From: Bugula neritina
Taxonomy: Eukaryota > Animalia > Bryozoa
Reading direction: 5' to 3'
DNA length: 64,000 nucleotides
NCBI GenBank assembly: GCA_964035545.1
Contig: OZ037771.1
Coordinates: 7,535,190-7,599,189, forward strand
Position 1 is the first letter of the stretch; the number at the start of each line of letters is the position of its first letter. Both the position numbers and the translations under genes were made by a program. Below the pieces are notes generated by a model. That model saw nothing but the letters and a program-made list of their open reading frames with translations, did no database searches and was not told where the DNA came from. Below, piece by piece: positions 3,494 through 60,962 of this stretch.

Positions 3494-3525
<32 letters not shown>

Positions 3526-3617
3526 CCATACACACGCACACACGCACACACGCACACACGCACACACGCACACACGCACACACGCACACACACATAAAAA
3601 CACACGCACACACATAC

Positions 3618-3696
<79 letters not shown>

Positions 3697-3935
3697 ATAT
3701 ACTATTTATAATAACGGAGTTTGAACTTGTAGATTCTAATGAAGTGATGGATGCAGGTGAAAATCCTGGAAACATATCTCCTGCACCAGAGAGCTTGCAG
3801 ACTAGCTGCGAGTTTGATGACATGACACCTGCAGTGTCAACAGCTGCCGGTAACTATCACAGCTCTATGCTACACACTCCTGGCAGTCCATCTAATCCGA
3901 CTTCACCCTCAGCTCTTGCAGACGAGTTTTCTTAG
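658..3935 (+). CDS. Phox2: Paired-class (Q50) homeobox transcription factor Phox2; 5' end not located. Exons 658-824, 1581-1801, 2936-3071, 3733-3935
   Basis: The spliced translation contains [50 protein letters not shown]|[15 protein letters not shown], the Phox2 homeodomain, with the usual PRD-class intron between Q and VWFQN. All junctions are GT-AG and phase-compatible. Stop TAG at 3933-3935. Confidence 0.93.
875..1040 (-). mobile_element. Degenerate SINE-like dispersed repeat, copy 1
   Basis: The reverse complement shares 'attcagtcata...gtgccacat...aaaacttttc..tcag.g.ttctcaca...atagtgacta' with 28782-28960. Confidence 0.5.
3495..3694. repeat. (CA)n/(CACG) microsatellite in a Phox2 intron
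   Basis: About 200 bp of interrupted CA dinucleotide repeat, directly visible. Confidence 0.97.
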
Positions 3936-11000: not shown

Positions 11001-11149
11001 ACCCGCAGAGAGGTAAACGGCGCAAGGCTATGCGACTTAGTAGCCGATTTCCTACACAAGCTGGCAAGTTCCACCATCATGCCAATTTCTACGTAAGAAG
11101 TTGTGCTGAAGCTACGGTGGGCCAAAGAGGAGAAAACGCAACAGAATAG
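5013..11149 (+). CDS. Uncharacterised, largely low-complexity protein with an acidic/Ser-rich N-terminal part and a Pro-rich C-terminus. Exons 5013-5154, 7617-9074, 9201-9334, 10017-10188, 10434-11149
   Basis: The long ORFs 7601-9130 and 10448-11149 are joined by GT-AG introns with matching phases (1,1,0,1), with no stop from ATG 5013 to TAG 11149. No folded domain recognised. Confidence 0.72.
5395..5525. repeat. Short degenerate tandem repeat, unit about 24-25 bp (attaatacattaaattgtccaagga), about 5 copies
   Basis: The repeated motif is directly visible. Confidence 0.7.
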
Positions 11150-16582: not shown

Positions 16583-17038
16583 TTATATAGAGTAGTATAG
16601 ACATTATATAGAGTAGTATAGATATTATATAGAGTAGTATAGATATTATATAGAGTAGTATAGATATTATATAGAGTAGTATAGATATTATATAGAGTAG
16701 TATAGATATTATATAGAGTAGTATAGATATTATATAGAGTAGTATAGGTATTATATAGAGTAGTATAGATATTATATAGAGTAGTATAGATATTATATAG
16801 AGTAGTATAGCTATTATATAGAGTAGTATAGCTATTATATAGAGTAGTATAGATATTATATAGAGTAGTATAGCTATTATATAGAGTAGTATAGCTATTA
16901 TATAGAGTAGTATAGCTATTATATAGAGTAGTATAGATATTATATAGAGTAGTATAGATATTATATAGAGTAGTATAGATATTATATAGAGTAGTATAGA
17001 TATTATATAGAGTAGTATAGATATTATATAGAGTAGTT
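16583..17038. repeat. 21-bp minisatellite (ttatatagagtagtatagata), about 21 copies
   Basis: Near-identical tandem units; source of the spurious TTLYNIY ORF. Confidence 0.96.
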
Positions 17039-18189
17039 ATATCAAAACATATCATATAACCACTAGATCGACAAGCTGATAAAAGCAAAACTTCAATACA
17101 ATACAATGCAGTGTCACCATCTGTCAAGAACACTTTTTTGGGACAGGTTTAATATAACAGGATGTTAGAACAAGGTTGACAAGAGCGATAACTTTATGTG
17201 CATGAAGTGTTTAATGACGTGGGGTGGATGTTATTATTATGTGAGAACAATATGTGATAGCATTGTAAGCCGCTATTAAACGGATAACTAAGTTTATGAT
17301 CTAAAATAGCTAAAGCCCATCCCCTCACCCCCCTATTACCACTAATTGTGATTAAAAAATTAATGCTGGGCAAGCATTATATGTGTACAAAAAATTTGAT
17401 GCATCAATAGAGGCCAAAGTTTTTCAAAGCAACTTATATTTCTATGCAATGATTTATTTAGGTTTATCAAAATGCTCCGGATTTTTAATAAAGAAAACGT
17501 AGCGAGATAAAGCTGTTTCCAGCCAGCTAAGAAATGATATGATCTTTGTTCCTCAAGTTTGTACTGAATAGCTGCTAACAGTTGAGCTATATACCTACAC
17601 AAAGGTTGTTTCTGATTAGTCTTCATATTTAGTTAAATACTCTAATCTTTACGGCTCAACGTCATACAAGGCGTAGCCTTTTCATCGCCATGGTTACTCA
17701 ACTACAGAGATGCCAACACGTTTTTTTTCTCCTAATGTTGTGAGCTACATGTCAGAGAACAAACAGATGTCATTGGTTAGCAGGTCTGTCTGTCAAAGCC
17801 ATTTTATGTATCCTTATAGAAAAATGGATTAATTATCAGATTACTTTAAGACTTCCCAACTGAAAGCTGCTTTGGCTAAAATGTCTCCGTTATATTTGGT
17901 GAGTTTAAACCACATTCAGAAAATACTTTAACTAATAAACCATATACTAATCATTAGGAAATATGTATGGTTTTAATACATATTCTCTTTCAAAGATTTT
18001 TTGTGTAAACAAATATGTAAAAATTTTATTTTTTCTGTTATTACTGATGAAGTATGAATTTGTAACAAAGTTTTTTATAGTGTCTGATATAGTGAATTTC
18101 AGTAATATGTGTTTGAGCACTACTTTGTGTTGTGTGGTTTTATACTTGACAAACTTTTATACATATAAGGTTTTATTTAATAAGGTAAT

Positions 18190-40096: not shown

Positions 40097-43000
40097 CTAC
40101 CACTCTCCATAGAATAAAGGAAACAAGTAAATCTTCCTTCTACCAGTGAGAGTATTTATAACCACAGGAGTCTGTGTCACGTAAACAGTTGGATTTCTTT
40201 CTCTCCTTTTACCAGATATTTTCCTCACTCTGTGCTTCACCTTCAAATATTTTAAAACTAAATATATGCTGTTGTTTGCAGGCATCAAAATTTTTATTTT
40301 TTTAAAACGCTGAATAGAAAACTAGAACAAATGTTATTCAAAGAAAATATCAAGAAATTCTGTTTTAATAGAGATAAAAGAAAGGCATCAAATCTGAAAA
40401 AAAATAATATAATGTGCAGGAAGCTTATAAAAAGTATTATATATGAAATAGAGAACTCAGTAAAGCTCATTCATTCTGCATCTTATACTATGACTATATC
40501 AAACTGCGACTATACTATACTATTACATGACGGTGTTATACTATGACTATATTATACTATGACTATAATATTACACTATGGCTATATTATACTATGACTA
40601 TACAATAACATGACTATAATATTACACTATGACTATATTATACTATGATTATATTACACTATGACTATATTATACTATGATTATATTATACTATGACTAT
40701 ATTATACTACGACTATACTATACTATGACTATACAATAACATGACTATAATATTATACTATGACTATATTATACTATACTATGACTACACTATACTATGA
40801 CTATATTATACTATGACTATATTATACTATGACTATATTATACTATGACTATATTATACTATGACTATATTATGTCTAGTCACTAAAACTATACTACTAT
40901 GACTACACCACACTGACTAATATGAAAACAGACTCTTCTAAATAGGAAATGATGTCACAGGAAGTTACTCACAATATCAAATAAGTCAGCAAGATCACGA
41001 TGACAGCCATGTCTGTGTAAAGTCCTGACAAGTGTTCTTATTAATAATGAGCCACTATCATGGAATCTCATGGATGCACTGTCTATTAAAATAACACAAT
41101 GAGTTAAATGGTAAATATTATACAGTGTATAGTAACAGTGAGTGACACTGCCCAGTAAAAACTAGTGGGAAATGCGAAAAGAAAATTTGAAAATTGTGTT
41201 ATTTCAGCAACGAAAGGTATATCTTGAGAAAGTCACATATTTGATTGGTTTCACAATTACATGATGGCGATCGGGAGTTGTGGCCCGTGATTTAGGTGAA
41301 TAAGGATTAACCACACAGAATTGTTTGTAAGTTAATCATCTCACTTTTTAGGCAGCAGAGTATAAGCTGTACAGACTAGTGTTTCACAGATTACATGAAA
41401 ACTAGATAACTGTAACTCACACACAAATACTCTATGTACTCAGTTCAGGTTTATGAAAGGTCACGTGATTAGACAGCACACCACAGCTAGTGGGGGTGCC
41501 AACATGCAAAAATGGGCGGGTGGAGCACATCAATACTAACCTTTGTTGCTATATATCACTGCAAAGCCAACATTCTACTGACCTCAGATCTGCGAGTACC
41601 TTTTTTGTATCTGGGGGGGTTCTCTCGTGAGAGGGGTGGATATACAGGGGTTCAGCATTTTTCAAGGGGGGACTATGGAACTCTAAATATTTAATTTTCT
41701 GAGTAGTTTAAGTTTGACATTAACAATATTTTCAAGGAATGTTGTACACATATGAAACTTTCTCTAACAAAAGTTTTGACCAAAAATAAAAAAGTGGGCG
41801 GAGCCTATAATATGACAAACTACTTTTTTGCATATACCGGATATTCTCTAAACTGCTACTTTTCTGTTCTAGCATTTAGAATGTTGATTTTTGGTATGAA
41901 AATACTCTATTGTGTTCTAATAATGCTCTCCGATTTTCGTTACGCTCTGAACTATATAACATCTTTCCCAACCATGACAAATAAAAAACATAAAACGGGA
42001 GTTATCTCCTCCGTGAAAAGTTATTGCATTTCTACCCAATAATATTGCTGTTTGTTGATAGGAACAACATCAGCATGATAAAAATGTATTCTTAGTGTAT
42101 TTATATTAGCTTATTGACTTATTTTGAATCATTGATTACGATCAATACTATTGAGTATTAATATTCAATATTTACTGTATAAATTGAGTGTCAGCAATAA
42201 TTAACAGACCACTAATATTCGATTTTTTTATCCATAAGTATAGTAACATAAAATATGGTTCATAAAAAAGTAATATCATGATTTCAGCATCACAAGCAAT
42301 TACTATGCTCTTTTATATCAGATATTGGTAGACATTTGTAATTGTATTTATTTATAAATAAGATAGTATTTAAAATTTTAATTTACAATAGATCAAGCTT
42401 TATTACAAAGTTTTGTTATCTCTAGCGTTTATATACCAAATTAAATATATTATAATTCTTCATCAGAACTGTGTTTGTTGCCATCATCATCATAATCAGG
42501 CTCTTTGTTTGAAAAAGAAAACTGGCCACTTTTGTTGTTGCAATCAAAACATTCACATAAACCACAGCATTTCATCATCAGGCGCTTGCATTTGCATGCT
42601 TTACTCTTACAGCCTGCTTTTTTGCATTTACATGCTGTTAAAATCACATCTGCGTTGCTCTCAAAATCATATTTTATCACAAAACTTAGTCAAGAGACAT
42701 TGCTGAATATGAAAAAGTCACTTGAGGATTCATGTAATCTAAATACAGCATGGCTATTGGCAAGACTTGCCCCAATCAAACTATTTCAATTGGATATAAG
42801 TCCTTCTACATATAACTGCCCCAGCTGGAGTAGCTTCAATGTAAGAAATTTGGTTGCCACAGAAGATAATAAAAGATCAGTCATTGGGTATTGCCCAATG
42901 ATTAATGCACCATCAACAGATCAATCAACAATTTATACAATCCTTCTGCAGCTAAAGAAAACTATGAAAGTTTTAAATCAGAAACATTCAGTAATTACAT

Positions 43001-46000
43001 TTGACCAAGCTATCTACAAGATTGCCAAAGAGATTCAATGGAACAAACCAACTGAATTTTCAAACACAATAATTCGAATGGGCGGTTTTCATATCTTGAT
43101 GAATTACATTGCAGCACTTGGCAAAATGGTAAAATCAAGCGGCCTCGCCCAAGTTCTTGTACACAGTGATATATATTTTGAAGTTACAGTGAAACAGGTG
43201 CTATGTGGTAAGCATTATAACAGAGGTGTACGGGCACACAAGATTTTGTATGAGGCAATATCAAGGCAGAAACTAAAATCTCTTTCGGAATGGCTTCAAT
43301 AAAATAATCAGTTTGACCCATTAGAGTCTCATAATACGTATTTCTATTGATGATAACTTGCGTGAATGGACCACTGTTGCAGCTAAAGTTGCTACTGCTA
43401 TAAAAAAGTTTGATTCTGATACTAAATTAAAATCTAACCTTTCAATGTTCTGGAATTCCTACCTTCATGCAGTAGAAGCCATGTTGGGATTTATTCGAGC
43501 TGAGCGTAGTGGCAACTGGCAATTATATTTGGACAGTATGCAGGCAATGCTACCAGTATTTTTTGCGTATGATCGCACAAACTACTCAAGGTGGCTGCCT
43601 ATATACCTTATTGATATGCTAAATTTGCCTGAATCTGCTCCAGAAGTTTATGGAATGTTTGCAAAGGGTTCATTCACTGTAAACAGGACAGGAAAAAAAA
43701 TTGCAGGTATGGCTCCAGATCAAGTCTTGAAGCAAACTTTGAACCGAGACAGCAAAACATCTGGAGGCATTATTGGCATTAGCAACCATGAAGAAGCTCG
43801 GACAAAATGGTTCTTAACTAGTCATATCAGAGCCCAACTGCTTTCTTTGCAAAAGGATTTTTGCCAAATAGCCTCACAGTCATCAACACTACACAAGGAA
43901 GACACAATCACTACAACTATGACGGATGAGATTGATACACAAGCAATTCTTTTTACATTGCAGCAGTTTGATGTTAAGTTGTTTAGCAATACTTCAACTG
44001 AACTTATTAATATTGCTACTGGAGTAAGTCCCGATGCGGAGACCTTCTTGTCAATAGTGACTGCTATGGCTCAGGGAGGAGAAATGGCTCAAACGTTTTT
44101 TCAAGATAGACTTTTGAATACAATAAAACCATTTTACACTGCTATTCACCGGCTTAAAATCCCTTCCTTTGACTTTGTGGCTAAATCACTTCAACCGGCC
44201 ATTAAACCAATGTTCCTAAAATATCATTTGCTAAACTTCTCATAAGTGCCAAAAGTGCCAAAGATTTGCATACAGTTCTAGAGAAAGAAATTGGTCCCAT
44301 TCCTCTTGCTCTATTTACTGAAAACGGACAGATGAGAAAAACATGCAAATTGCAACTAATGCATATTTTGGAACAGAAATATCTTGGAAACAGGGTCTCC
44401 AATGATGATAGTCAACTGTCCACCAACAAATCGATCATTATTGATGGTAGGTGCATACTTCACTCGACAAAAACATCAGGCACTTTTTATAGCTATGCTC
44501 TGAAGATGTTGGAAATATTTCTTGAATGTGGCAAAGGATATACAAGGGTTGATGTAGTGTTTGACGTGTATTCTGAAACATCAATTAAAGCACAAGAGCG
44601 TATTAGACGGGGTGCCCAATAGATGTGCTCTATTTCCATTATTCATAACAACCTGCCTGTGCCTAAAAACTGAAGTGCTTTTCTGAGCAATATTCACAAC
44701 AAAAATGAGTTGGTAAATTACATAGTGAAGGTGCATGAAGTAGACATATTCAGAAAATTCCAGCTGGTACATTTTTAGTGTGTAGCGCCAAAGAAGTCTG
44801 TGTTCTGCAAAACCATTATCGTTAGAATTGTAACAAATTGAAATCCAATCATGATGAAGCAGACACAAGATTAATCCTTCATGCAGCTGATGCACTGAGT
44901 GATTACGATTTGGTAGTAATAAAATCAGTAGATACCGATGTTGCTATTATTGCGCTTAACATCATCTTAGTAATGTTTTAACTGATGAGCAGGCTAATAA
45001 AGATGTAGTAATCTTCGTTGGAATGGGGAGTCACAGAAGATATATATCTCTTTTTGAATCAGCCAAAAAAATCTAAAAAAAGTTCTCAAGAATCTATTAT
45101 CTCTCCATGCACTTACAGGTTGTGACTCAGTAAGTTCTATCTTTCGAATATCTAAAAAGCGTGCTTTGGAGGTACTTGAAAAGGAAAGCTATAATCTGTC
45201 TTTAGGTTCTGATGATTGGTCCCCAGTATCAGAAGAAACATACTTAGAGTGTGAATGATTTGTCTCCAACCTATATGATGCCTATGATGATATCACTGAA
45301 GCAAGATATAAAATATTGGCTTTAAAAAATGTCTCCAGTGAAGCACAGCTACCACCTAGTAGGAATTCCCTAGAATATCACGTGAAACGAGCCAATTATC
45401 AAGTTACACTTTGGCAACTTGCTTTTACACCTATTTTACTTCATCAGCCAATTTTTGACCATGGTTGGGATACTAACTTAACTCCAATAAAATATGATTT
45501 TGAGAGCAACGCAGATGTGATTTTAACAGCATGTAAATGCAAAAAAGCAGGCTGTAAGAGTAAAGCATGCAAATGCAAGCGCCTGATGATGAAATGCTGT
45601 GGTTTATGTGAATGTTTTGATTGCAACAACAAAAGTGGCCAGTTTTCTTTTTCAAACAAAGAGCCTGATTATGATGATGATGGCAACAAACACAGTTCTG
45701 ATGAAGAATTATAATATATTTAATTTGGTATATAAACGCTAGAGATAACAAAACTTTGTAATAAAGCTTGATCTATTGTAAATTAAAATTTTAAATACTA
45801 TCTTATTTATAAATAAATACAATTACAAATGTCTACCAATATCTGATATAAAAGAGCATAGTAATTGCTTGTGATGCTGAAATCATGATATTACTTTTTT
45901 ATGAACCATATTTTATGTTACTATACTTATGGATAAAAAAATCGAATATTAGTGGTCTGTTAATTATTGCTGACACTCAATTTATACAGTAAATATTGAA

Positions 46001-48458
46001 TATTAATACTCAATAGTATTGATCGTAATCAATGATTCAAAATAAGTCAATAAGCTAATATAAATACACTAAGAATACATTTTTATCATGCTGATGTTGT
46101 TCCTATCAACAAACAGCAATATTATTGGGTAGAAATGCAATAACTTTTCACGGAGGAGATAACTCCCGTTTTATGTTTTTTATTTGTCATGGTTGGGAAA
46201 GATGTTATATAGTTCAGAGCGTAACGAAAATCGGAGAGCATTATTAGAACACAATAGAGTATTTTCATACCAAAAATCAACATTCTAAATGCTAGAACAG
46301 AAAAGTAGCAGTTTAGAGAATATCCGGTATATGCAAAAAAGTAGTTTGTCATATTATAGGCTCCGCCCACTTTTTTATTTTTGGTCAAAACTTTTGTTAG
46401 AGAAAGTTTCATATGTGTACAACATTCCTTGAAAATATTTTTAATGTCAAACTTAAACTACTCAGAAAATTAAATATTTAGAGTTCCATAGTCCCCCCTT
46501 GAAAAATGCTGAACCCCTGTATATCCACCCCTCTCACGAGAGAACCCCCCCAGATACAAAAAAGGTACTCGCAGATCTGAGGTCAGTAGAATGTTGGCTT
46601 TGCAGTGATATATAGCAACAAAGGTTAGTATTGATGTGCTCCACCCGCCCATTTTTGCATGTTGGCACCCCCACTAAGCTGCTACCTGCTCTTTTTATTC
46701 TATTTGTTACTAATTTTCAATTGAATAATGGATTTGCCGTTTGAAAATTTTGGATTGTAAAGCTTTGAGAAATTGAACCCGTGACATTTCGATAATGAAA
46801 TTGGAAAACACCTATTTGGAGAATGGGCAAGTACCAAATAGACAATTGGAAAATAGACAATTGGAAAATAGAGAATATTCAACCTGGCCTAATCCAGAGG
46901 GGGCGTTTAGTATCTGGTCAGGTTCATAAAAGCTTTTTGTAAATGTGAACAAGTTTGAATTAGAACTACTCCCTAACTAAATCTACTTCTATGATAGCCT
47001 AACTGATACGGCCATTATATTTTAGAATTGACCAGATACCGGAGAGCCCCTTAGGACTAGACCATGTTGAATATTTTTCATTTTCCAAATGTCTATTTTC
47101 GATTTGCCCATTTTCTAAAAGTCCATTTTCCAAATAGTTGTTTTCCTATTGTCATTTTCAAAATCTCCTGTCACCATAAAATTATACCAATCCTAAAAAT
47201 GATGCAAGAAATATTCGTTTCTTTCGGTGGACAAAATTCTTACTTTCAAAGCAGGAGTGAAGGATTAGAAGGTCGTCAACATCAAAGTTCCTCTGTCCAG
47301 TTGAAGTCTCAGCTTCCTGTTGATGAGTTCTGAGAGCAGAAAGTTCTGGTGAGGAGGAGTTGGTACTCTGTTGAATATTCTGCTCAGTTTGACTGACTGA
47401 GTTACCTGATTGATTAGTAACACATGAGATATACCAACCAGTATTCTATGTATATGTATGAAGACTAGAGTATCATATAATAAAGTATTACAATAGTATA
47501 ATATATTCTTACTCGTATCATATCTACACTCACCAACTCTGCACGCCTGAATAACCACAACTTTAGGCTTGCCGGCCATGTTGGGAAAATTTGTAGAGTT
47601 AATGAGACTGTAGATCTGTGTTAGATAGACTGGCTGTGAGTCAACTCCATGAATCATTCCATTAGCTCCGTGTGCAAACAGAAACAGGAAGAACATACCA
47701 TAAGTGTTATGAATCTCATCTCTTGTCTCTGATTGAATACACTGGAGTATCTCCTGTATATGAATATAACACAACACACACAGTATACAAACTCAATGTG
47801 AGAGAGTCTATTCTATGAACAGGACTGACCAGCTCTAATAAACATACATTTCTATTCAGTACAGAGAGAATACAAGTAAAGACAACTCCTGGGACTACAT
47901 TTATATATTCAGTGTGAGTGTTAGGAGAGGGGAGAATTATTTTCTTCAATAATTGCAGCTCAGACACAGAATGAAGCAAACATACAAACATAGGGGGAGG
48001 AGGGGGGTGCGACCCAACCATCTGCCAACATCTTTTATTTCAACAACTGCTATCCATATATAGAGGCAACCAAGCATATTTGTCACATCTCATACTAGCC
48101 TCTAGGAAGTTAGCTCCGTGAAGCAAAAGTTAGCCCCAAAGCGAAGAGTTTGCATTTCTCTACTTTAATAACTGATTCAATAGACAAGTCTACAGGCTAT
48201 TATAACATTGAAGTGAGACATTAACCACTAATAACTAGTCACACTACGTGATAAGAAGAGGGAGACAACTACAAGTAAATAGAAATATACCTCAGCTGTG
48301 AGATCCTTCTGCTTCACAACCTCAAATCCCATCTTCCTGAACAGAGCAAATGTGTTGTCAACATCATAACTAGAGCCAAGTCTCTCTCCTACATTTCTAT
48401 ACTTGTTGTTGTTTATAATCAGAGCTCTTCCTCTGAATGGACTCGTCATCTTGTATAT
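40097..48458 (-). CDS. Caspase (p20+p10) portion of the fusion gene: five exons, with the Academ element in the intron before the last two
   Basis: p20: YKMTSPFRGRALIINN...FLFAHG...IQACRV. p10: DDLLILHSCFE|NSASMRFHDSGSLLIRTL...DLADLFDI|VKHRV...QTPVVINTLTGRRKIYLFP. Confidence 0.9.
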
Positions 48459-51400
48459 CTGTAGATACAGACTATGTAATTAGTTTAGTACTTATTCATA
48501 TCATATTATAAGCAACCGTAGAATGATGAGTTAAAAATCATCCATGAGTAGACTAATATGGTTTCGGACATATTTTGTGGCTTTAACACAGCTGCTAGCC
48601 CAAACAGAACTAGGAAAACTGAAAGTACAGGGTAGCAGTTTGTTTCATAGAAAAACAACACCTCACTCACACTTACCATACCTTAGCCCGTAACAGCAAA
48701 CATCAGTCATTTTTACAAATGTCTGAGCTTCCTGTACGGCATTGCAGTACGTTGAGATCAAGCACTACTCGATTCAAAAATGTTGCGGCGGACTTCTATT
48801 GGACCGAAAAATTTTGCGTCAACTCATTGGATATAATTGTCCAATGAAGTGTCACCTAATAGCCAACTTTGAAAACTTCAGACCGGATGCATTAAAAATG
48901 GCTGATATTTTACATTACGGCCTACGGTACGGTAAGTGTGAATGAGGGGTAAATCAATCACAAGACTGTTAAAGGCAGGTTATTTCAAACTTGAAGTAAA
49001 GTTGGTTATTTATAGCGTTAAAAAGAAGGTAAAATATTTTTATAGCTAAGACAGTTGATAAGTAGATGAAAATAGAAAAACAGAGAGGAGAGCCAAGGCT
49101 ATTCGTAGATAACAAAGAGGAGAGCCAAGGCTATACAGAGATAACAGAGAGGAGAGCCAAGGCTATACAGAGATAACAGAGAGGAGAGCCAAGGCTACAC
49201 AGAGATAACAGAAAGGAGAGCCAAGGTTATACAGAGATAACAGAAAGGAGAGCCAAGGCTAGACATAGATAACAGAGAGGAAAGCCAAGGCTATACAGAG
49301 ATAACAGAGAGGAGGGCCAAGGCTATACAGAGATAACAGAGAGGAGGGCCAAGGCTATACAGAGATAACAGAAAGGAGACCCAAGGCTATACAGAGATAA
49401 CGGAGAGGAGAGCCAAGGCTATACAGAGATAACAGAGAGGAGAGCCAAGGCTATACAGAGATAACAGAGAGGAGAGCCAAGGCTATAGAATATTCAACAT
49501 GACATACAAACCTTTGAAGTGTTGATGAAGAGAGACTTGATACTCTGATTAGTAGTAGGAACTAGTGTCAACTTGGTAAGATCTTCTGAAGTGGAGGTAG
49601 GACCTTCTTCTTCATCCGAAACATCACTCAGTACATCATCAGTACCAACAGTATGAGTAGCAGCTCCACTGTGTCCAATATTATCTATATGTACAGGAAA
49701 CATCACATAAACAGCTCAGAGAAATGTAATGAAACCAACAACCTACAGGAACAACTTCAACTGTCAATAACAAACATGGAGAATCAGAAAGGAAGAAAGT
49801 TATTCCTAATCAATTCTCTAGAAGTAAGTTTAATTCATGATACCTGGTGGCTTGTAGTTGGTCTTCACAAAGTCATTCAGTTTCTGCAGCTCATCTCCAG
49901 AAAGCTGGAAAGCTGCAATAGAAGTATGAATTATGGAGGTTGCTATTACTTGAACAGTACATCACCATCTGAATATGCTATAAATAACCTAAGAGAAGAT
50001 AATCATACTAACTCGGGTGTAAGAAACAAGCTGGGACATCTCTGTATGTTCCACATCTACCAGGTGATGAATCTGAAGTCATGGGAAGGGATTCACCATC
50101 TTTTGGAGGTCGACACCAGGGTGGGTTAATGAACCTCTTTGGACGCTTTTCTCCAACCAATGGGCAGTGAGCACACAAGTTGACACAGGTGATTTTACTT
50201 GCTCTCCATGTGGAGTTGACGTACTTTACGGTTGAATGAACTGAAGTGGTCAACATCTTCCATGCATTACCTATCTGTCGACAAGCAGACGTTACAGAGA
50301 TAGTGAGTTTACGAGATTTGTGGTCATGCAGCAACTGCAGGGTGTAAGCTTCGTCTCTCAGCTCCACTCCATTCTTTCTTACAGCTTTTTCACTACAATC
50401 CTGGAGATCATTGAGAAGTTTCACAGAAACCTGGTGGTAGACGTACTGAGGGGGAGTCAAGCCACCAAACAACATGTCTACTGACAGTTTTACGGGTTGC
50501 CTCTTGGAGGCAGTCAAGTCAGTGAAATACTCCTGTGAGAAGTACGGCATAGTGTAACTTAGTTTCTGGGATGAATCCTTCATCTCGAATAACAATTGGA
50601 AAGATTGTAGCAATGCGACTGCCACCTTCATCTTGTCACTCGTGGTGAAGCTGGTCTCTGCTATCAGAAGATGCTGAAACAGCTTCTCACTCATTCTGCC
50701 AGTTCGAACAAACTCTTGAGCCAAATTATTAAACTCTGTTTCATTTTCTATCAACGGATTGTCAAGTGAATCCTCTTCGATCGCTGACCGTCGATTGCTC
50801 CACACTTCCTTCTCGTGAGTGAAGAATACGTGGAGCAGCTTTGTGACCACAGAGATGTCGTAGAATACCAGAGACTGCAAACTCTCCCTATCCTGGTACC
50901 AAATGAGATGGCCGCTGTTATGCATGTACGACAGAATCACTCTCAGCTGGTCTTCATTTGCCAACTCGCATTCAATGACATGTTGAAGCACTTCTGGAAA
51001 TGTCTTGTAACTTCCATGGAAGGAGTTGAATGTTTGAGCAACTTTTCTCCACAGAGTAGGCACCTTCTTCACGACTAGTTTACTGTCAGATATGATATGA
51101 CTTCTCAGCTCATCAAACACCTCTTCATATTCATCACCCACAACATATATATCTTGTTCTTGAAACATCTCTTGGCGCTGAAAATGAGAAATTCCTGTGA
51201 AAAAAGAGCTGGAATAATTCTCTTTAGAATTTTCTTCTAGTTGCAACAAATTGAATACACTTTTGGTGTGGAAAAAGAACAGCCTTTTTAGCTCTTCAAA
51301 TCCATCTGCACTGTAAGCATCTCGGTGAGTGAAAACTAGTTTGGGTGCTCTGAGCCTAGGATTGGCCAGGTACAGATGTGAGAGCCAATCAAAATATGTG

Positions 51401-54400
51401 CATCGAACTGCTTCATTACCATTCACTTCTAAACAAAGCTCTTCAAACTCCTTTAGATTCACAACCACAAAAGGAATACAGTTCTGTTTCAATGTGAACT
51501 GGTAGGTAGATTGGTAGATTTCATTGCCACCAAAATCTATGAACTGAAGAACATTGTCACCAACCACTAACTTTTCCATATTGAAGACACGAGTTGTTTC
51601 ATCTTCCACTGCATCAGCCGCTCTATTGGTTAGTTCCCTTTTGCCATCTGATCTTACCAGCGTTTTTACTAGGCTGGTTTTCCCAGACAAAGACCTACCC
51701 ACTAGAGCAACAGCAGCTTCAGATACTTCTACATGACCACCAGACCTAAGATCTTTATAATACTGTCTGATAGCATGTAGTCCGTTTACACACACAGCAT
51801 AAGGTGGAGATGTGAGTGATTCACACCAGGGGCAGTACAGTTCAGTCAGATTAGGCATGTTGAGAAGTTGAGGAGTTAAAGATGTCATCTGAAAGTTGCC
51901 TGACAAGTTTAGGTGTTGGAGATTCTTGAGTTGACCGACACTACCAAGTAGGCATATAATATTACTTTAGTATTATCCTATATCAAATGTATTATGCTTA
52001 AAAGTAAAACTTGATTAAATACATAATAGGTAAGATCTAACATAGCCTGAGAGATAAATAGTGTTTGACAGCACAACTGTTGTAAATGACTAGAACACAG
52101 GCCAAACTGAAAATATAGACTATAATGATTATATTTTGACTCAACAGTACAACCATTACAGTGAAAAAATTGAGTATAGATTTTCAACTTGCAAATTTTA
52201 TTACATTAAAAAAATTTTAATCTACAATACAATTGCAATATATGGAAATTGTATTATTTCAAAACTATTGCAGTCATACGCAAAAGATTCCACACCCCCA
52301 TGCACTTTTTGCAGCTTTGATAAATGGCTAAACAGGATTTTCAATTTCTCAATACTCTAAAAGACTTAAAATAATGCCAAACTGTTGCATATGGTGTTGT
52401 GTGTTGTCTTCTAATCTAACTAAACAAGTTTAAATAATTTTAAATAATATTTTGAAGTAGTAAGTATCTAACATAGCCTGAGAGATAAATAGTGTTTGAC
52501 AGCCCAACGTGGCAAATGACTAGAACACAGGCCAAACTGAAAATATAGACTATAATGATTGTTTGACTCAACAGTACAACCATTACAGTGAAAAAATTGA
52601 GTGTAGATTTAAAATTTGCAGATGTTATTAAATTTGAAAACTTTGGATCTGCTATAATACAATTGCAATATATAGACATTGTATTACTGGAAAATTATTA
52701 CAGCCATGCGTAAAAATATTGACACCCTCATATATTTTTTGAAGCTTTTATAAATAGCTAAACAGGACTTTCAATCTCTTAATATTTCAAAAAATTTGAA
52801 GTAATACCAAACTGTTGCATATGGTCTTGTATGTTGTCTACTAATCTAACTAAATATATTTAAATAATTTTAAATAGATAAACTACATTTGTTCTAAGAA
52901 GCTCGAAAGCTGAAGTAAATTTTGAAATGTTGTTTACCCATTTAGGCTCATTTTTGCCTCCATACCATTGTACATACAAGGCAAAGTACTGTATTGTGAA
53001 TAAATATTTACAAAGTTTCAACCTTGGGAACAAGCGTTGTGCAACTTGAAATGTAACTGTACTACAGACTGAGTAAGCAGTAATGACATAATATACCTAA
53101 CAAAGCTACTATTTTTCTAAACTCAAACTTCACTTAATTATGGTGAGTGGTGGAAGACAAAATTTTAGCAGGCAGCAGCTATCAAACTAAGAAGTACTAA
53201 AAGAAAAAGCAACTGGGTTTGGTTTTGCAACATTACAGGAAACTGGGGAGTGATTTATGGAATGTCATGACATTGGTGGTTTCATACTTCAAATTGGCTC
53301 ATGAAAATTACTACTCCATGGCAAGAACTGGTGAAATATAAATTTCTGAAGGATAAATTCATGCTGCCAGCTGCGTGGAGATTATGCAGAAAAAAGCAAC
53401 TTTACAGAAAGTAGAAAAAAACTTACTTTCTACCATACTTTCCTAGTAAAAGAGAGAAAATTCAATTACTAGAGTGGCCCATGCAAAAGCCCAAAAGAAT
53501 ATTTTTATAGACAATACAAAGAAGAGTAGCTGCGATAAAACCAACTGAAATGGTCAATTTAGCTAGAACTGTCATCAATGCATGGTACAGGATGTGAGAT
53601 AAATCACAAAATCAGCTGTGTTAGTGGAGAATATGTCAGCCTGCTGTCTAGCAGTCATTGGTGCTAATAGTTACTCACTCACACTGAAACACTGATATGT
53701 TATGTGCAAGAACCTCTTCACACACAATTAACATCTCATTCTACATTCTTCTTCATTTTGCTAACCAAATGAAGAGAAAATTTCAAATCCCCGCACAATT
53801 ATGTTTCAGTGCAAAAATTTTCTAGAGTTGTAGCTCAGTCAATAAATTGCATTTTATATATATATTTAAATTTTTGCAGCATGAAAAATTTCAGAAGTTG
53901 CAAACAAAGAAGTAAACTGGTAAGCAATTTGGGGGTGTCAAAACTTTTACGCATGACCAAATAACATATTGCAAGCTACAATCATATTTATTCAAAGTTA
54001 TTATTATCTATAGTTTATATAAAAAAGATGATCACATATGATATCTTATATGTGTACATAATAGAAGAACATATATAACTAATATAACTCACCTGTCTGA
54101 TAATGTATGTAAGTCACAGCTCCTTAGATTTAACTCTGTAAGTGACTCCATCTTTGGTATCACCTCAGGTAATGTTCCTAACTTATTCTCAGACACTTCT
54201 AATGTGTGTAGATGTGTGAGTTGAGAGAGACTGTAATATACATACAACATACCATGAATATAATTATACAAGTTACAGAAATATTATGTTAAACATACTG
54301 TGAGTTTATTCTAAACTGTTGCTTTGTAAGTATGGATTGTCAGTTAATTGTGTGCAGTAAGGATAGCCAAAAGAGAATAGGCAGTTTCAACATGTGGTAA

Positions 54401-57400
54401 ATATATAGAAAGAATCCTGGTTGCGCAATGCTGACATCCTGTAGTTTGTAATGGAAAGTAAAAAGTATTCAAAAGATGGAAAACCTCTAGGTGTGGTGAC
54501 TATGAAGAGAAGGGAAAGATCACAGAGAAAGTATACGGAGAGAAGAAAAAACAGACAACAAATAAAATTGTAACAGCCAAAGAGAAGGCATATGAGACAG
54601 TCTATGAATACTTACAAGAGATCGAAGCAAAGAAACTATACACCTATATACCTATAAGAACCTATATATACCTAGATACAAGTTGGCCAAAACAAGAAAA
54701 AGACGATTATTGGATATTAATAGAATGAAATTGTGACTATAATCCATCAGAATGGTGACAGCATAAATGAGAATGTTGAGACACATCTTTAGGATAATTT
54801 ATGAGGAGCATATGGAAAATGATGTGATTAGATAACAGGTTGGAGTGATATGAATGTCTATAAACATGAGGAAAAACGTCTGCAGTGGTATTGCCATGTT
54901 TGCAGCAAAGATGATGATATTAGCTTCAACTCCAATGGATTAGAATCAATGGTATAATGGATATGAAGAATCTGACAAATTGAAACATACAATATAATCT
55001 AACAAGAAATGAGGGTGGTCTAGGCCAGTGGCTCCCAACTTTTTTCTACTATTCCCCCATTTAATAAATGTTGACTACCGTATTAATTCCCCCCCCCCCT
55101 TTCGTAAAGCAAAAAAAGTTTCATGACTGACATAATGATAATATAGAATACAATACAATATTGTTTGTTCTATTAAAATATAATTATAATAGTAGTTATA
55201 TTATCGTCATTATTATGTTATGCATGTATAGAACAAGGAGCAGTTCAATTTATAATGATTCTTTTGTGCCAGCTTGCATAAGTCTGCATTGCTGTTTTTG
55301 GCTATGCCCATCTTAATTCACTCTGCAGATTAGGGCAGTTTCTCTTCTCTTTGAATTAATGGGAATCCTATCTCACTTGGAAAGATGGCGCTGGGTGGCA
55401 CCAAAATTCTACTTTGTCAGCTATGTGTGGGGAGAGTTTGCTTGTTAAAACCCAAAATGATTTTAGGTGAAAATGGGCACAAATGGAGAAGTAGGTAAGA
55501 CTGGCACACTGATGGTAAATTGTCCCAAACCCCCACCCCGGCTATCAAAAATTAACCCCAAACCAAAACCTCCACCTTGTATTCAAACCCAAAATCCTCA
55601 CCTCAAATCCGACCCCCAAACGCTCACCCCAATATTGAAAATGGTGCAGGTAGTAGTGAAACAAATGGAAAATTGGGTAAAAATGGCACATTTTTAATAT
55701 TAAAGTTGAAGATTTGGGATTGGGGGTTCAATATGGAGGGTTTCGGGTTCAGCATGGGGGGTTTGAGAAAATTTAACACCAGTGTGCCAGTTTTACTTAA
55801 AATCAGAACAGGTTCTTTTCCTAAAACAGTTCACGGAGTGTGGGGAAAGACACCATATTTTTGATAGACGCCACAACTTTAGTGTAACTTTGAAAACATT
55901 GATACTGCAATGCAAAGCAATGATAAGATTATTTATAGAGATTGGCTTGCTTAATGTTGGCCTATTGGTTTTTGCAAACTTTTTGACATCGATTTAAAGT
56001 AGTTCAGAGAACAATCAGGGTAGAGTAATTAATAAACACTTTCATGTTGAAGTGAACTGAGATTGCAGAATATGGTTTGGTTAAATAGATTAACTAAGAG
56101 GAAGGTTTATAGATATGCATGTACATGTAACATGCAGGAGCTTAAAAAAGCCTTCAATAAACTGCGTGAATTTCTTAAAAACTAAATCCCCCCTAAAAAG
56201 CCCAAACTCCCCTCTAGGGGAGAATTCCCTCCAGCCTGGGAACCACTGGTTTAGGCAAAAAGGGTGGGAGGTTTGTTTAAGAATAATATCCACTTTATTA
56301 CTAGAGAGTTGGTATGCTGGGACTACTAGTATCAGTTCTGTTACACTTTATTATATGTTTATATAATAGTAGAACACATATAACTATTATGACTCACCTG
56401 TCTGGTAATATATGTAAGTCACAGCCCCATAGATGTAACTCTGTAAGTGACTCCATCTTTGGTATCACCTCAGGTAATGTTCCTAACTTATTACCAGACA
56501 CATCTAATGTATGTAGATGTGTGAGTTGAGAGAGACTGTAATATACATACAACAAACCATGACTATATTTATACAAGTCACAGGAATATTATATGGTAGA
56601 TATGCAGTGAATCTAAACTATTATTGCCTTGCTAGTATGAATTGGGTAAGTTATTTGCATTTAAGAATAATATCCATATTATCACTAGAGAGTTGGTATG
56701 CTGAGACTACTAGTATCAATCATATTATACTTTATTATATGTTTACATAATAGTAAAACATATATAATATAACAAATATATCTCACCTGTCTGGTAATGT
56801 ATGTAAGTCACAGCACTCTAGACGTAACTCTGTAAGTGACTCCATCTTTGGTATCACCTCAGGTAATGTTCCTAACTTATTACTAGACACAACTAATGTG
56901 TGTAGATGTGTGAGTTGGGAGAGACTGTAATATACATACAATATTAGTAATTAGCATGAGATGAAAACCATTTATCAAAGAATGGACTAAAGAGTTGGAA
57001 TAAGTTTATAACTCAATAGCAGTTGTAACAATATCAAGTGAGCAAAACATTGCAGAGCGTTTCTACTCTCCGTGAGTGGCTAGTGCTGCGGAAAAAGTGA
57101 CCTTTGACCAGTAAACGAAGGTTGACAGATGCCATGGCAATAAGATAGCGATTGAAGAGAATGAGAGAAGACAATTTCCTGGACTAAGTATAAAGTGATT
57201 GGCAGGTATTATCATACAACCAGGGGATACAATTGGAATAATAATGAAGGTAGTTATTATTTCAGAGTGAATCTAGAAGCATTATAACTCATCTCCTCCC
57301 CAGCAGGTTCAGCTCAAACTAATATAATTCTATTTAAGTACAATAATGGAAACATTTCTATACTTTTCAATTTCAATTCTTTACTGGTCTTAATGAATTT

Positions 57401-60400
57401 CTTTTGGGGGTTTGGTTGAACATAATTTAGTTTGCACTTTTGCTCATCAAGCGCACAGACTTTTCCAAAATTCCACCCTTACTGCACCCACTTTTGTAAT
57501 TCAAGGAAAACAGAATGACTACTCAGGTGCAGTAGGGATATGAAGGAATATTGCTGACATGCCATACAAGTATAACTCACCAAACACTTCAACATTTCAG
57601 TAAAGAGTCAGTGAGTTACAAGTGAAAAATCCACAGCAAGAAACACAGCTCAAGTATATATAATTATCCAAAGAGAAGTCATGCTCTAGAGTCTAGAAGA
57701 TAGAAATATTGTGACCTTAAACATGTTGATAACAAAGTGATGATAGACTTATTATTCTAAACTGTTGATACTGGTTAGCTGTTGAATACACAAGTTAGTC
57801 ACAAGTGGAGCAAACTCTGTTTAGAATATCAATCCTGCCTGGTAAGGAAACATAGTCAGTTACTCATGAGATGGAAGACAAGATGAATACAGTAGAAACG
57901 AGACACATTTTTTGGATAACTTACGAGGAGCACGTTAAACGTGATGTGATTAGATAACAGACTGAGGTGAAAAAAATGTCTGCAGTGGTATTTGCATATT
58001 TGCAAAAAAGAAATGATGAGGATATTAACCTCAATTATAATGTATAAAAATCAATGGTATATGGAGATATTAAAAATCTGACAAATGGGAACATACTATA
58101 AAATATATCAAGAAGTACTGGAGCATTAAGCAAGAAGAAGTCCACAGCCGAGTGTGATTGAGCTGGGAGATTGCAGAACGGCTACCTTGCAGGACTATAG
58201 TCAGTTAGGTGAGAAAGGCGAAAAGTTGTGTTTAATCTTATACTAATCTCTACAGTTTATGTAAAAGCAGTGAACATGTTATGACTCACCTGTCTGGTAA
58301 TGTATGTAAGTCACAGCACTCTAGACGTAACTCTGTAAGTGACTCCATCTTTGGTATCACCTCAGGTAATGTTCCTAACTTATTACCAAACACATCTAAT
58401 GTGTGTAGATGTGTGAGTTGAGAGAGGCTGTAATATACATACAATATACTACGACTATAATTATACAAGTTGTAGAAATATTATATTAAACATGCAGTGA
58501 CCTTTTATTGTTTCTGCTCTGCAAGTATGAATTGTGTCAGTTGATTGTGTTTATGAATTCACTTTATAACTAGAGAGTTGGTATGCTGGGACTACTAGTA
58601 TCAGTTTTATTCTACTCTATTATAATATATTTACATATAATTAGAACACAGATCGAATGTGCTACACATACAAAATTACCGATTAAACCACAGTAAATAT
58701 GGGAAGAAAATGCTTTTTAAAAAATAAAATGATTCAGTGTAACAAATTGCTAAATCAAAAGCAGTTGTAACAATTCTCCTGTAAAGAATATGTTGAAGAT
58801 GGTTTTACTCTGCATGACCAGGTTTGGCTGCCAAGGCAGCCACCTGAGAATTACTGATTACAGAAGGAAAGTAAAAAACTAGAGACAAAACAAGAGAAGA
58901 TAAATCTCCGAATTTTTAATTCACTTAAACTTGACTCTGTTGCAAGTAAATTATGATGCAGTATAAAACTGGCCATAGGTGTGATAGTAGCTGTAAGGCA
59001 GGCAATAACAGGTAGGCCTAAGTAATGAAAAGTCCAACAATTACTTTGAGATAATAAGAATAAAGTATTCACAACCCTGGACTAAGTATAAAGTGATTAT
59101 AAAAGCTGGAGATACAATTGAGATAATGCTGATAGGTAGGAAGGGAGATCTTATTTCAGAGTGACTCTAGATTACTACTCATCTGTATATATAAACTATA
59201 GCTGCGTTCAGAACATATTAAATATAGTTGATTGTTTTACTCCATATTTCATTAATCTAAAAATATAGAATTTTATCCCACAATTTTAGCAACTCAAACA
59301 ACTTCTAAAGCACGGATAATACACTAGAAGGAACGAAGATAAAACTAATAGCAGTGAATACTTTGAAGAATATGAAACAAACCAAAAGCTACAAGTTGTG
59401 CAGGTAAGAATATATTTGATTTGTGATTTCCTCAATGAATATACAACTATCCATTTCTCTACTGCCAGAATAAATATAAAAGTTATCCCCACATGCAGGT
59501 AATCAGCTATGATGTGTGAGTCACCAGAAGTCATTGTTGACCTCTTCCCCAACAGCTTCAGCTCAAACTAATATAATTCCATTAAAGTGCAATAATGGAA
59601 AAAACTCAATATTCTTCAAATTCAATTATTTACTGGTCTATATGATTTTCTTTTTAGGGGTTTGGTTGAACATAATTTAGTCTGCACTTTTTCTCATCAA
59701 ACACACAGACTTTATCAAAATTCCACCCTTACTGCACCCACTTTTATAACTAAAGGAGAACAGAATGACTACTTAGGTGCAGTAGAGATATGAAGGAATA
59801 TTGCTGACATGCCATACAAGTATAACTCAATAAACACCTCAACATTTCAGTAAATAGTCAGTGAGTTACAACTGAAATACTGACAGTGAAATACACAACT
59901 CAAGTATATGTTATTATTCAAAGAGAAGTCATGTTCTAGAGGATAGAGGATAGAGGGATTGTGACCTTAAACATGTTGATAAAAAAGTGATGATAGACTT
60001 ACTATTCTAAACTGTTGATACTGGTTAGCTGTTGAATACGCAAGGTAGTCACAAGTGGAGCAAACTCTGTAACAGCAGGTGGCAGATCTCCCTCTATAAA
60101 TAGGTCAGTGATCACATGACCTGAACAGAGCTTCTTTATTTCCTCCTTTGTATAGAGTTGTGTAGATTTGACGGACAAACTTGTGAGGCTAATAGGATCC
60201 ATACCAGAGTGCCTCCACCAACAGCTGTATTTCTCTGCTAATAACAAATGATCTAGTTTTAGTACATTCGTACCTAATAATAGAGTAAATATAATATCAC
60301 CTGGTTTATAGTACATCTATCTATGGTAAAATTCTAGTAGTATAAATTACATCATTTTACTGTTGAATTACTTATATAATAATTGAAAATATAATCCAGC

Positions 60401-60962
60401 AGTAAACATATTCCTATATTCAAAGAGACAAACATACTAATTGTTGAGGCATCAACATGAAGATTAATAGGAATAAAACTGAGACTTTCTTCAACTTTTT
60501 ATATCAGGTAGACTGAAAACAAATGAGAAACTTATCTGATAGACAATCCAATGCTGATGTTTCTATTTAAGATTTCACATACAACATGTTGATAAGAAAA
60601 TACTAGCAAGTATAAGAAATGGCAAGAATTAGAAATAAACCTGTTTTTAATGTGATCCAAAAAGTTATCAACAGCTTCATTAAGCTACATGCAGATAAAA
60701 GTCACAGAAAGTTATGGTGTATACAGAAACACCATAGTATAAATATAGTTCAGAGAAGAAACTTAAAGGGGGATAACAAAGTCTTTATTTTAACTTTCAA
60801 GTTGGAAGATGTAATTGAAACCTATTCAGGTATATTTAAAGAATACTGTATTCAGGTGAATATTTTACCATTCTCCAGACCAACTAATATTGTATACGGA
60901 CCTGTTTGTGAAGTTGCTGCTGTTACATCATCCTCAGAACTGGTTACAGAGTTGGTAGCCAT
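40097..60962 (-). CDS. LRR-ROC-COR-caspase fusion protein (Roco GTPase with a C-terminal peptidase C14 domain), about 1273 aa. Exons 60962-60902, 60237-60003, 58427-58290, 56924-56787, 56535-56398, 54230-54093, 51940-50013, 49912-49844, 49684-49512, 48458-48291, 47753-47534, 47405-47244, 41082-40973, 40240-40097
   Basis: Fourteen exons (3822 nt) join through GT-AG introns with matching phases and no internal stop. LRR motifs LxxLxLxxN/C; ROC motifs GRSLSGKTS, DFGG and LVFTHRD; COR motifs VPTLWRKV and LSYMHNSGHLIWY; caspase motifs RGRALIINN, RLGSSYD, AHG, GKPKVVVIQACRV, SMRFHDSGSLLI and TLTGRRKIYLFP. The first ATG follows a possible acceptor, so the 5' end may extend further. Confidence 0.85.
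40505..40875. repeat. Degenerate 16-bp minisatellite (tatactatgactatat) in the last caspase intron
   Basis: Tandem units directly visible. Confidence 0.9.
41488..46676 (+). mobile_element. AcademX-like DNA transposon, defective, with 1190-bp inverted arms and a 3-bp target-site duplication (AGC)
   Basis: Termini TAGTGGGGGTGCC...GGCACCCCCACTA, flanked by AGC at 41485-41487 and 46677-46679. Arms 41488-42677 and 45487-46676 are reverse complements. The interior encodes transposase-like, XPG-like and Cys-cluster segments, the architecture described for AcademX. Confidence 0.85.
42678..45714 (+). pseudogene. Disrupted, 5'-truncated Academ-type transposase with XPG/FEN1-like nuclease and C-terminal Cys cluster
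   Basis: Transposase-like motifs VITFDQAIY, RMGGFH, HYNRGVRAHK, RSGNW, YDRTNYSRW and DQVLKQTLNR. Nuclease motifs IIIDG, DVVFDVY, HDEADTRLILHA, DTDV and HALTGCD. C-terminal CKCKKAGC...CKC...CCGLCECFDCNN. Interrupted by stops (e.g. 43300, 44620) and frameshifts. Confidence 0.88.
46780..47175. mobile_element. Degenerate foldback/MITE
   Basis: Imperfect inverted arms: gtgaca...tggaaaat...aatattcaac...tatctggtca versus tgaccagata...gttgaatatt...attttcca...tgtcac. Confidence 0.6.
48660..48948. mobile_element. MITE with imperfect terminal inverted repeats of about 55 bp
   Basis: Left end cctcactcacacttaccatacc...atcagtcattttt versus right-end reverse complement cctcattcacacttaccgtacc...atcagccattttt. 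Confidence 0.7.
49078..49488. repeat. 32-bp minisatellite (ataacagagaggagagccaaggctatacagag), about 13 copies
   Basis: Tandem units directly visible, with no unique spacers. Confidence 0.95.
50013..51940 (-). CDS. Single large exon encoding the last LRRs, the ROC GTPase and the COR domain
   Basis: Covers the 632-aa ORF: LRR cap LTSPPYAVC..G..AIRQY, P-loop GRSLSGKTS, G3 DFGG, G4 THRD, COR motifs and a terminal CAHC. Confidence 0.92.
52030..52880. repeat. Intronic tandem duplication, two diverged units of about 430 bp
   Basis: catagcctgagagataaatagtgtttgacagc at 52041 and 52472; ccaaactgttgcatatggt near 52377 and 52807. Confidence 0.85.
54093..58427 (-). CDS. Four near-identical 138-nt phase-2/phase-2 LRR exons, two 23-aa LRRs each: 58427-58290, 56924-56787, 56535-56398, 54230-54093
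   Basis: Each reads SLSQLTHLHTLxVxxNKLGTLPEVIPKMESLTELxLxxCDLH(T/I)L(P/S)D between a tattacag acceptor and a gtgag donor. Exon 56924-56787 is absent from the ORF track. Confidence 0.93.
54420..54920 (+). mobile_element. Decayed RTE-like LINE fragment; partial duplicate near 57880-58100
   Basis: Broken translations AKEKAYETVYE..., LAKTRKRR and IRxxVGV...KRLQWYCHV resemble RTE-clade ORF segments. Confidence 0.5.
55026..56248. mobile_element. Non-autonomous hAT (Charlie/Buster-like) element between LRR exons, containing a nested MITE
   Basis: Ends CAGTGGCTCCCA...TGGGAACCACTG; 8-bp flanks gtctaggc (55018-55025) and gtttaggc (56249-56256) match at 7 of 8 positions. Confidence 0.7.
55465..55800. 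mobile_element. MITE/foldback-like element of the same family as 23865-24100, nested in the hAT element
   Basis: ggtaaaaatggcaca motif and gaaaatttaaca..agtgtgcca.ttttac shared with 23865-24100; internal inverted symmetry with a C-rich arm and a G-rich arm. Confidence 0.65.
57178..57820 (-). pseudogene. Diverged duplicate of about 59077-60070, including a dead partial copy of coding exon 2
   Basis: Long shared blocks such as cctggactaagtataaagtgatt and ttccacccttactgcacccactttt. 57753-57820 copies the 3' end of exon 60237-60003 with its donor GT changed to AT. Confidence 0.8.

Follow-up and report, generated by a model that had tools for sequence, protein, structure and literature searches.

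A Roco GTPase-caspase gene family in Bugula neritina: a candidate single-chain sensor, switch and executioner

The window analysed here is a stretch of 64,000 nucleotides from the bryozoan Bugula neritina (contig OZ037771.1, positions 7,535,190 to 7,599,189). On its minus strand, from 60962 to 40097, lies a gene of 14 exons, re-derived exon by exon from the sequence, that joins leucine-rich repeats (LRRs), a Roc-COR GTPase module and a caspase in one reading frame and is referred to below as the Roco-caspase gene. We have little doubt that the fusion is real, or that the gene belongs to a family of at least 61 loci. With moderate confidence, we consider the whole to be best explained by an intact gene whose product would unite sensor, switch and executioner on a single chain.

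Gene structure and transcript evidence

Every acceptor in the gene model is AG and every donor GT, the phases are compatible throughout, and none of the 14 exons contains an internal stop; the coding total of 3822 nt corresponds to 1273 codons and a TAG. The parts follow one another as an N-terminal exon pair, four interchangeable LRR cassettes, one Roc-COR exon, two linker exons and five caspase exons (Table 1). A preliminary description of this DNA had proposed 14 phase-compatible exons with an open frame of about 1273 aa, which is borne out by the re-derived splice sites and phases, and the coordinates that it gave for the start and end of the gene and for two small exons bridging COR and caspase (49912-49844 and 49684-49512) are exact. 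Its statement that these exons link COR to the caspase exactly in phase also holds, and RNA junctions support it.

No signal peptide is evident by eye in exon 1, and the product is probably cytosolic. The four LRR cassettes of the window gene are almost identical to one another and differ nearly exclusively at the x positions of LxxLxLxxN, the predicted concave face; the protein as a whole has about 10-11 LRRs. An acidic linker of about 80 aa, encoded by exons 8 and 9, lies between COR and the caspase. An in-frame TAG is found at 50010-50008, just beyond the exon 7 donor.

Transcript evidence comes from two RNA-like runs (X7 and X1) in which depth is zero in introns. The joint that enters the caspase, 49512/48458, is flanked in X1 contigs by 154 and 139 nt and is of the GT..AG type, as are joints in RNA-like contigs at 48291/47753 and 47534/47405. 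At 49844/49684, loose ends in both runs read the expected sequence exactly, from either side. The evidence at 50013/49912 is weak, one loose end at 50015 continuing with the 8 nt that open exon 8. Of the three junctions by which the preliminary description proposed to check the fusion, two were seen and the first is weakly supported, and the RNA is not assignable to one gene copy. The window gene or a near-identical paralogue is transcribed and spliced across the part that runs from Roc-COR to the caspase. GenBank models for Bugula join the same parts: one (P0006) contains COR-B, linker and caspase, and another (P0001) contains LRR, Roc, COR and caspase.

Table 1. Exons of the Roco-caspase gene and other features of the window
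Feature	Coordinates	Strand	Content and evidence
Exon 1	60962-60902	-	ATG and 20 hydrophilic codons; donor GTCCGT
Exon 2	60237-60003	-	Family-specific N-terminal module, 78 aa
Exon 3 (LRR cassette 1)	58427-58290	-	138 nt, phase 2-2, two LRRs; Pfam LRR_4
Exon 4 (LRR cassette 2)	56924-56787	-	138 nt, phase 2-2, two LRRs; Pfam LRR_4
Exon 5 (LRR cassette 3)	56535-56398	-	138 nt, phase 2-2, two LRRs; Pfam LRR_4
Exon 6 (LRR cassette 4)	54230-54093	-	138 nt, phase 2-2, two LRRs; Pfam LRR_4
Exon 7	51940-50013	-	1928 nt; last two LRRs, Roc, COR-A, COR-B, Cys/His-rich tail
Exon 8	49912-49844	-	First linker exon; RNA loose ends at 49844, 49686 and 50015
Exon 9	49684-49512	-	Asp/Glu-rich acidic linker; RNA joint 49512/48458
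Exon 10	48458-48291	-	Start of caspase p20 (IYKM...); Pfam PF00656, alignment to CED-3 and caspase-3
Exon 11	47753-47534	-	p20 with catalytic His and the Cys of QACRV; Pfam; RNA joints 48291/47753 and 47534/47405
Exon 12	47405-47244	-	Intersubunit linker with FDVDD, start of p10
Exon 13	41082-40973	-	p10 core (S-M-R ... GSLLIR); BLASTP to Watersipora caspase domain
Exon 14	40240-40097	-	p10 C-terminus and TAG stop; BLASTP to Watersipora caspase domain
Mobile element	41488-46676		5.19 kb in intron 12; inverted arms 41488-42677 and 45487-46676
Minisatellite, intron 9	49079-49487		32 nt, 12.8 copies, 93% matches
Minisatellite, intron 13	40483-40873		16 nt, 23 copies
Open reading frame	3435-3935	+	166 aa
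Open reading frame	7601-9130	+	509 aa
Open reading frame	10448-11149	+	233 aa
Open reading frame	16573-17133	-	186 aa

Domain composition of the product

Domain searches used single exons, or database proteins as proxies. In exon 7, Pfam recognised Roc (PF08477, 30.3 bits at a cut-off of 27), and COR-A (32.9 bits, cut-off 35.3) and COR-B (17.4 bits, cut-off 27) matched below threshold in the single-sequence search. The G1, G3 and G4 motifs of Roc are intact (GRSLSGKT at 51699-51676, DFGG at 51537-51526 and THRD at 51330-51319). At the sequence level Roc resembles its counterparts in CtRoco and MbRoco2. Searching with a profile derived from 46 relatives gave LRRK1 and LRRK2, the alignment extending from the final LRRs across Roc and COR-A. 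AlphaFold predicted a structure for exon 7 (pLDDT 88, pTM 0.88) that was compared with solved structures using Foldseek. It matched the LRR-Roc-COR crystal structure of CtRoco from C. tepidum (E 3e-19, 599 columns) and LRRK1/2 over about 650 columns; against the isolated COR domain 3dpt the TM score was 0.63-0.65. By sequence and model the product is a ROCO protein, in which Roc is followed by COR-A and COR-B and of which GTP binding, GTP hydrolysis and a nucleotide-dependent dimer-monomer cycle through COR-B would be expected. The exon 7 product has two close matches among Bugula database proteins, KAF6039231.1 (91% identity) and EB796_015160 (96%).

The last 58 or so codons of exon 7 (50013-50190) contain a cluster of cysteine and histidine residues after COR-B (C-x-H-C ... 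C ... C). Across the 46 relatives C578 and C581 are invariant and H580 and C618 nearly so. The cluster may be a zinc site, and no domain match explaining it was found.

In single-exon Pfam scans, Peptidase_C14 (PF00656) scored 38.5 bits on exon 10 and 49.2 bits on exon 11. Among solved relatives the caspase part is nearest to CED-3 and caspase-3, whose SHG and QACRG motifs align with AHG and QACRV of the window gene; the catalytic His is encoded at 47672-47670 and the Cys at 47543-47541. The Arg of GERLG in exon 10 aligns with Arg64 of caspase-3, and the Gln of QAC with the caspase-3 Gln. By alignment, the S1-pocket residues (Arg179, Gln283 and Arg341 in caspase-1 numbering) are present, together with p10. 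Exon 13 matches the caspase domain of a protein from a second bryozoan, Watersipora (P0061; BLASTP E 2e-10, collinear), and the exon 14 match to the same domain (E 2e-7) follows directly after it; the combined alignment to the p10 of P0061 covers the conserved Arg and the GS-x-x-IR motif. Pfam returned no match on the stretch that includes exon 14, exon 13 not having been scanned separately. FDVDD and the Asp-rich linker are candidate sites for Asp-directed autoprocessing.

No Pfam match was obtained for exon 2 or exon 9, and exons 1, 2, 8 and 9 gave no CARD, DED or Death domain, in agreement with the preliminary description, which saw no CARD/DED prodomain. The LRRs, intact ROC motifs, COR, acidic linker and p20 plus p10 with His-Gly and QAC motifs that it listed were all found. 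Its analogy with initiator caspases fits less well, the caspase being most like CED-3 and caspase-3 and not specifically an initiator. Pfam matched neither NACHT nor NB-ARC in the window gene, and the switch is Roc-COR.

The kinship with CED-3 and caspase-3 raises the possibility that the Roco part tethers or inhibits an effector-type caspase, which a separate initiator would activate in trans through the Asp-rich linkers, so that the protein would act as a substrate or reservoir. CED-3 and caspase-3 as the nearest solved relatives, the Asp-rich sites ahead of p20 and at its boundary with p10, and the many caspase loci in the genome away from listed Roc-COR exons are all consistent with such an arrangement. 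However, CED-3 is itself an initiator caspase that activates itself in proximity, and the fusion to sensor-like LRRs and a GTPase switch persists across dozens of paralogues as well as in another bryozoan. We consider activation in trans quite improbable.

A large family with variable LRRs

The genome searched measures 216 Mb at about 33% G+C. It contains at least 70 paralogues of the Roc-COR exon and at least 177 matches to the caspase profile, many of them not adjoining a listed Roc-COR exon. A caspase match lies on the same strand less than 8 kb downstream of 61 of the 70 listed Roc-COR exons, at a median distance of 1.5 kb. The paralogue count that the preliminary description had suggested thus shows that the gene is no singleton. 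Among 20 distant paralogues that were sampled, a caspase follows Roc-COR in every one; THxD and the caspase His are also present in all 20, and the P-loop, DxGG and the catalytic Cys in 19 each. Within the window, neither a Roc-COR exon nor a caspase match occurs in positions 1-39000.

Nine close copies, 91-100% identical and with caspase exons in common, are arranged in two tandem arrays on C7 (C7:7599190-7727749 and C7:5032819-5119800) that have opposite orientation and lie about 2.5 Mb apart. Genes in the arrays are spaced by about 20-30 kb, and some introns reach 17-21 kb. According to a genome search, each of the nine close paralogues has between 2 and 6 LRR cassettes. Exon 2 is kept and open at 58 loci or more and shows 71-86% identity in eight close paralogues, in all of which exon 12 is 98-100% identical. 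Exon 13 is present in the close paralogues and exon 14 in seven of eight, its position in the remaining one (L005) falling outside the stretch compared.

Selection was estimated from the window gene and the next paralogue (L001, C7:7599190-7609000). The ratio of non-synonymous to synonymous substitution rates (dN/dS) is low in Roc (0.14), COR (0.24-0.31) and the caspase (0.20) and higher in the LRR tail (0.86); Roc, COR and caspase are under purifying selection, and the LRRs are variable. For the same pair dS is 0.149 in the Roc-COR exon and fivefold lower, 0.029, in the caspase exons (47244-48458). This contrast suggests gene conversion, or exchange of 3' halves, among tandem copies. Intron 10, the only intron compared with L001, is 85-93% identical. 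The family of at least 61 Roc-COR-caspase loci evolves by birth-and-death.

In the whole genome, a six-frame search carried out exon by exon gave a single weak NACHT match (PF05729, E 6.5e-6), a count that is a lower bound because such a search may miss domains split by introns.

Bryozoan zooids undergo massive cell death in cycles, and the animal ROCO proteins LRRK1/2 and DAPK1 act as scaffolds in signalling rather than as pathogen sensors. The family might accordingly drive tissue turnover, such as polypide regression to brown bodies and larval metamorphosis, with the LRRs serving as scaffolds that site a GTP-gated caspase; a caspase resembling CED-3 and caspase-3 would suit this role. What speaks against it is the form of the family, namely at least 61 loci, tandem arrays, variation in both cassette number and concave face, and the dN/dS of 0.86 in the LRR tail. 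Arrays and LRR variation of this kind fit recognition receptors and not a housekeeping death pathway, and we therefore regard a turnover role as unlikely.

Relatives and known systems

RefSeq predictions from the cheilostome Watersipora subatra include full LRR-Roc-COR-caspase proteins, for example XP_067947674.1 (P0061, 1419 aa) and P0064 (1413 aa). They share with the window gene the domain order, a complete Peptidase_C14 domain and a p10 exon boundary at the same alignment position. They differ in LRR number, their Roc-COR parts are only 28-32% identical to that of the window gene, and RefSeq names them 'MFHAS1 homolog' or 'uncharacterized'. Judged by these sequence features, they are most likely members of the Bugula family from another cheilostome.

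Amphioxus predictions also combine LRR, Roc, COR-A/COR-B and caspase in identical order (Branchiostoma belcheri P0178, 1571 aa, and P0179; B. floridae C3ZI91, P0184), and several have been automatically named 'MFHAS1 homolog'. Their Roc-COR is only 21% identical to that of the window gene, and their caspase domains fall in another clade, nearer to DED/CARD caspases (E 1e-45) than to those of bryozoans (E 1e-20 to 1e-26). The caspase tree, which is small and has long branches, favours independent fusions in amphioxus and bryozoans but does not prove them. A single origin with amphioxus as the default was rejected weakly, the caspases being in different clades.

In bacteria, proteins with LRRs, an AP-GTPase (Roc) and COR carry C-terminal effectors of about 24 domain types, caspase among them (Kaur, Iyer, Burroughs and Aravind, eLife 2021, PMC8195603), and have been proposed to counter invaders (PMC8195603). 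Fast-evolving N-terminal LRRs, Roc-COR, a death effector and multiple paralogues per genome are common to these systems (PMC8195603) and the Bugula family. In contrast to the bacterial diversity of effectors, the effector is apparently fixed as a caspase in the 20 Bugula loci sampled, and the window gene, which is an animal one, has 13 spliceosomal introns and encodes a metazoan p20/p10 of the CED-3/caspase-3 type. On account of these introns and of the type of the caspase domain, we rejected the idea that a complete Roco-caspase gene was recently acquired from bacteria.

MFHAS1, LRRK1, LRRK2 and DAPK1 share with the window gene a Roc-COR with a G4 motif of the THxD type, and in MFHAS1 and the LRRK proteins LRRs likewise precede Roc. 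The effector is a kinase in LRRK and a kinase plus death domain in DAPK1, MFHAS1 has none, and none of these proteins carries a protease. They are moreover single genes, unlike the Bugula family of at least 60. An MFHAS1 orthologue would lack a catalytic effector, and here a complete caspase follows COR. The nearest clusters in the ESM Atlas are MFHAS1-like (leads only, score at most 0.87) and bacterial ROCO clusters were also returned; the Atlas showed no Roco-caspase cluster, which is not evidence of absence.

NLRC4, NLRP1 and the Apaf-1/CED-4 and CED-3 systems resemble the proposed protein in having a repeat sensor, an NTPase switch and activation of a caspase by proximity, and lineage-specific expansion with variable LRRs is common to the NLRs and the Bugula family. 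The switch of the window gene, however, is a Ras-like GTPase with COR in place of the STAND ATPase of NLRs and apoptosomes, and since the caspase is on the same chain there is no CARD, PYD or DED adaptor step. By analogy, the Roco-caspase protein, which is not an NLR, may nevertheless do NLR-like work.

Other ROCO expansions and fusions are known. Brown-algal LRR-ROCO genes, in which LRR exons are shuffled or alternatively spliced, have been proposed as immune receptors (PMC3341825, PMC11378527); brown algae belong to a kingdom other than that of Bugula, and the passages that our searches returned mention no caspase. Trichoplax has ROCO proteins with CARD or TIR (PMC4104024), and molluscs have ROCO-TIR proteins (PMC9334734). 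A Roc-COR open reading frame with 29% identity on an ENA metagenome contig (L029) has no caspase downstream by tblastn. Our literature search found no paper on an animal Roco-caspase or on the Bugula family in bryozoans. The architecture is not unique, as two animal phyla have it among their database predictions and bacteria have known analogues. The preliminary description took the architecture to be possibly uncharacterised; for animals the literature search agrees, while automatic predictions in GenBank and RefSeq from Bugula, Watersipora and amphioxus, and the published bacterial form (PMC8195603), limit its novelty.

Proposed mechanism and its weighing

We infer ligand sensing, control by GTP, a direction of the dimer-monomer change, autoprocessing and a role in death or immunity along the following lines. 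A ligand signalling non-self or danger would dock on the variable concave LRR face. Docking would alter Roc's nucleotide state, and the LRRs would swing on the LRR-Roc hinge in a CtRoco-like manner. The oligomeric state would then change, or an autoinhibition be lifted, such that two caspase domains could pair. Paired caspases might undergo self-cleavage at Asp residues (in FDVDD, which separates p20 from p10, and in the Asp-rich linker), and the activated caspase would cleave death substrates. The protein would work as an NLR inflammasome or apoptosome does, adaptor-free and with a Roco GTPase replacing the STAND ATPase. A sensor-triggered role in death or immunity has in our estimate about an even chance of being correct; the specific order of these steps is doubtful.

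Several observations weigh against this mechanism or against an intact window copy. CtRoco, the nearest Roco homologue of solved structure, undergoes a GTP-driven hinge movement in which it opens and becomes monomeric upon GTP binding (PMC11052575). By analogy this argues against a simple order in which GTP leads to a dimer and the dimer to an active caspase, and the switch may run in either direction. The preliminary description had supposed that COR dimerisation turns the caspase on, a proposal that the behaviour of CtRoco leaves unsupported (PMC11052575); two alternatives to COR dimerisation, a lifting of autoinhibition by the LRRs and higher-order assembly, are just as likely. The caspase, being CED-3- or effector-like, may also need cleavage in trans.

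The remaining points concern the gene itself. The RNA evidence consists of assembled contigs, and its junctions span exons 7-12. At 50013/49912 the support amounts to only 8-10 letters. The contigs are unassignable to the window copy because the caspase exons are 98-100% identical among paralogues, and those that extend beyond 47244 carry a p10 exon of paralogue type and not exon 13 of the window. The 30 nt of RNA that continue after 47244 have no match in the window at up to 3 mismatches; they derive from a paralogue or allele, as they resemble a variant of exon 13 found in some paralogues (SASMKF...). In addition, intron 12 of the window copy carries a 5.2-kb transposon, and a stop interrupts the Roc-COR exon in two of the nine close copies.

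These findings could mean that the window copy is non-productive or that the fusion is a minor product, with the transposon, or the TAG past the exon 7 donor, giving rise to a caspase-less LRR-Roc-COR protein, a separate caspase transcript, or both. The element, the paralogue-type RNA past exon 12 and the stops in two sister copies would fit such an outcome, as would one RNA contig that crosses the exon 9 acceptor unspliced at about one tenth of the depth. Set against them are 14 open exons with consensus splice sites, the junction evidence over exons 7 to 12, and exons 13 and 14 that remain 97-100% identical to those of paralogues with short introns. We give a non-productive copy or minor fusion very little probability, and retain the intact gene as the better account.

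Other features of the window

The arms of the mobile element in intron 12 are 1190 nt each and perfectly complementary, with open reading frames in the roughly 2.8 kb between them that have no Pfam match. In most paralogues intron 12 measures about 0.62 kb. At least 28 near-full copies of the element, with 92-98% identity, are found on most chromosomes of the genome; it therefore represents a young DNA-transposon family. The 100% identity of the arms could be an assembly artefact.

Introns 9 and 13 each contain a minisatellite. Four long open reading frames lie elsewhere in the window (Table 1), and Pfam found nothing significant on them, the only hit being a sub-threshold match to Baculo_PEP_C on the one at 16573-17133.

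Implications

If the proposed mechanism is true, an inflammasome- or apoptosome-like receptor would have arisen in animals at least once from a Ras-like Roco GTPase in place of a STAND ATPase, its caspase being part of the same chain. The Roco-caspases would offer a natural minimal system for the control of a fused enzyme by Roc-COR, which is an open question for LRRK2. They would also represent a convergent sensor-switch-executioner design in bacteria, a chordate and a lophotrochozoan. We put forward tentatively, as somewhat less probable than not, the wider proposal that Roco-caspases are germline-diversified cytosolic receptors for immunity or allorecognition in bryozoans that replace NLR inflammasomes in a genome nearly devoid of NACHT domains, with shuffled LRRs for specificity, a Roc-COR gate and a caspase in cis, and that the architecture arose independently in bacteria, amphioxus and bryozoans. 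Family size, tandem arrays and LRR cassettes make the Roco-caspases a candidate for the immune or colony-recognition repertoire of bryozoans.

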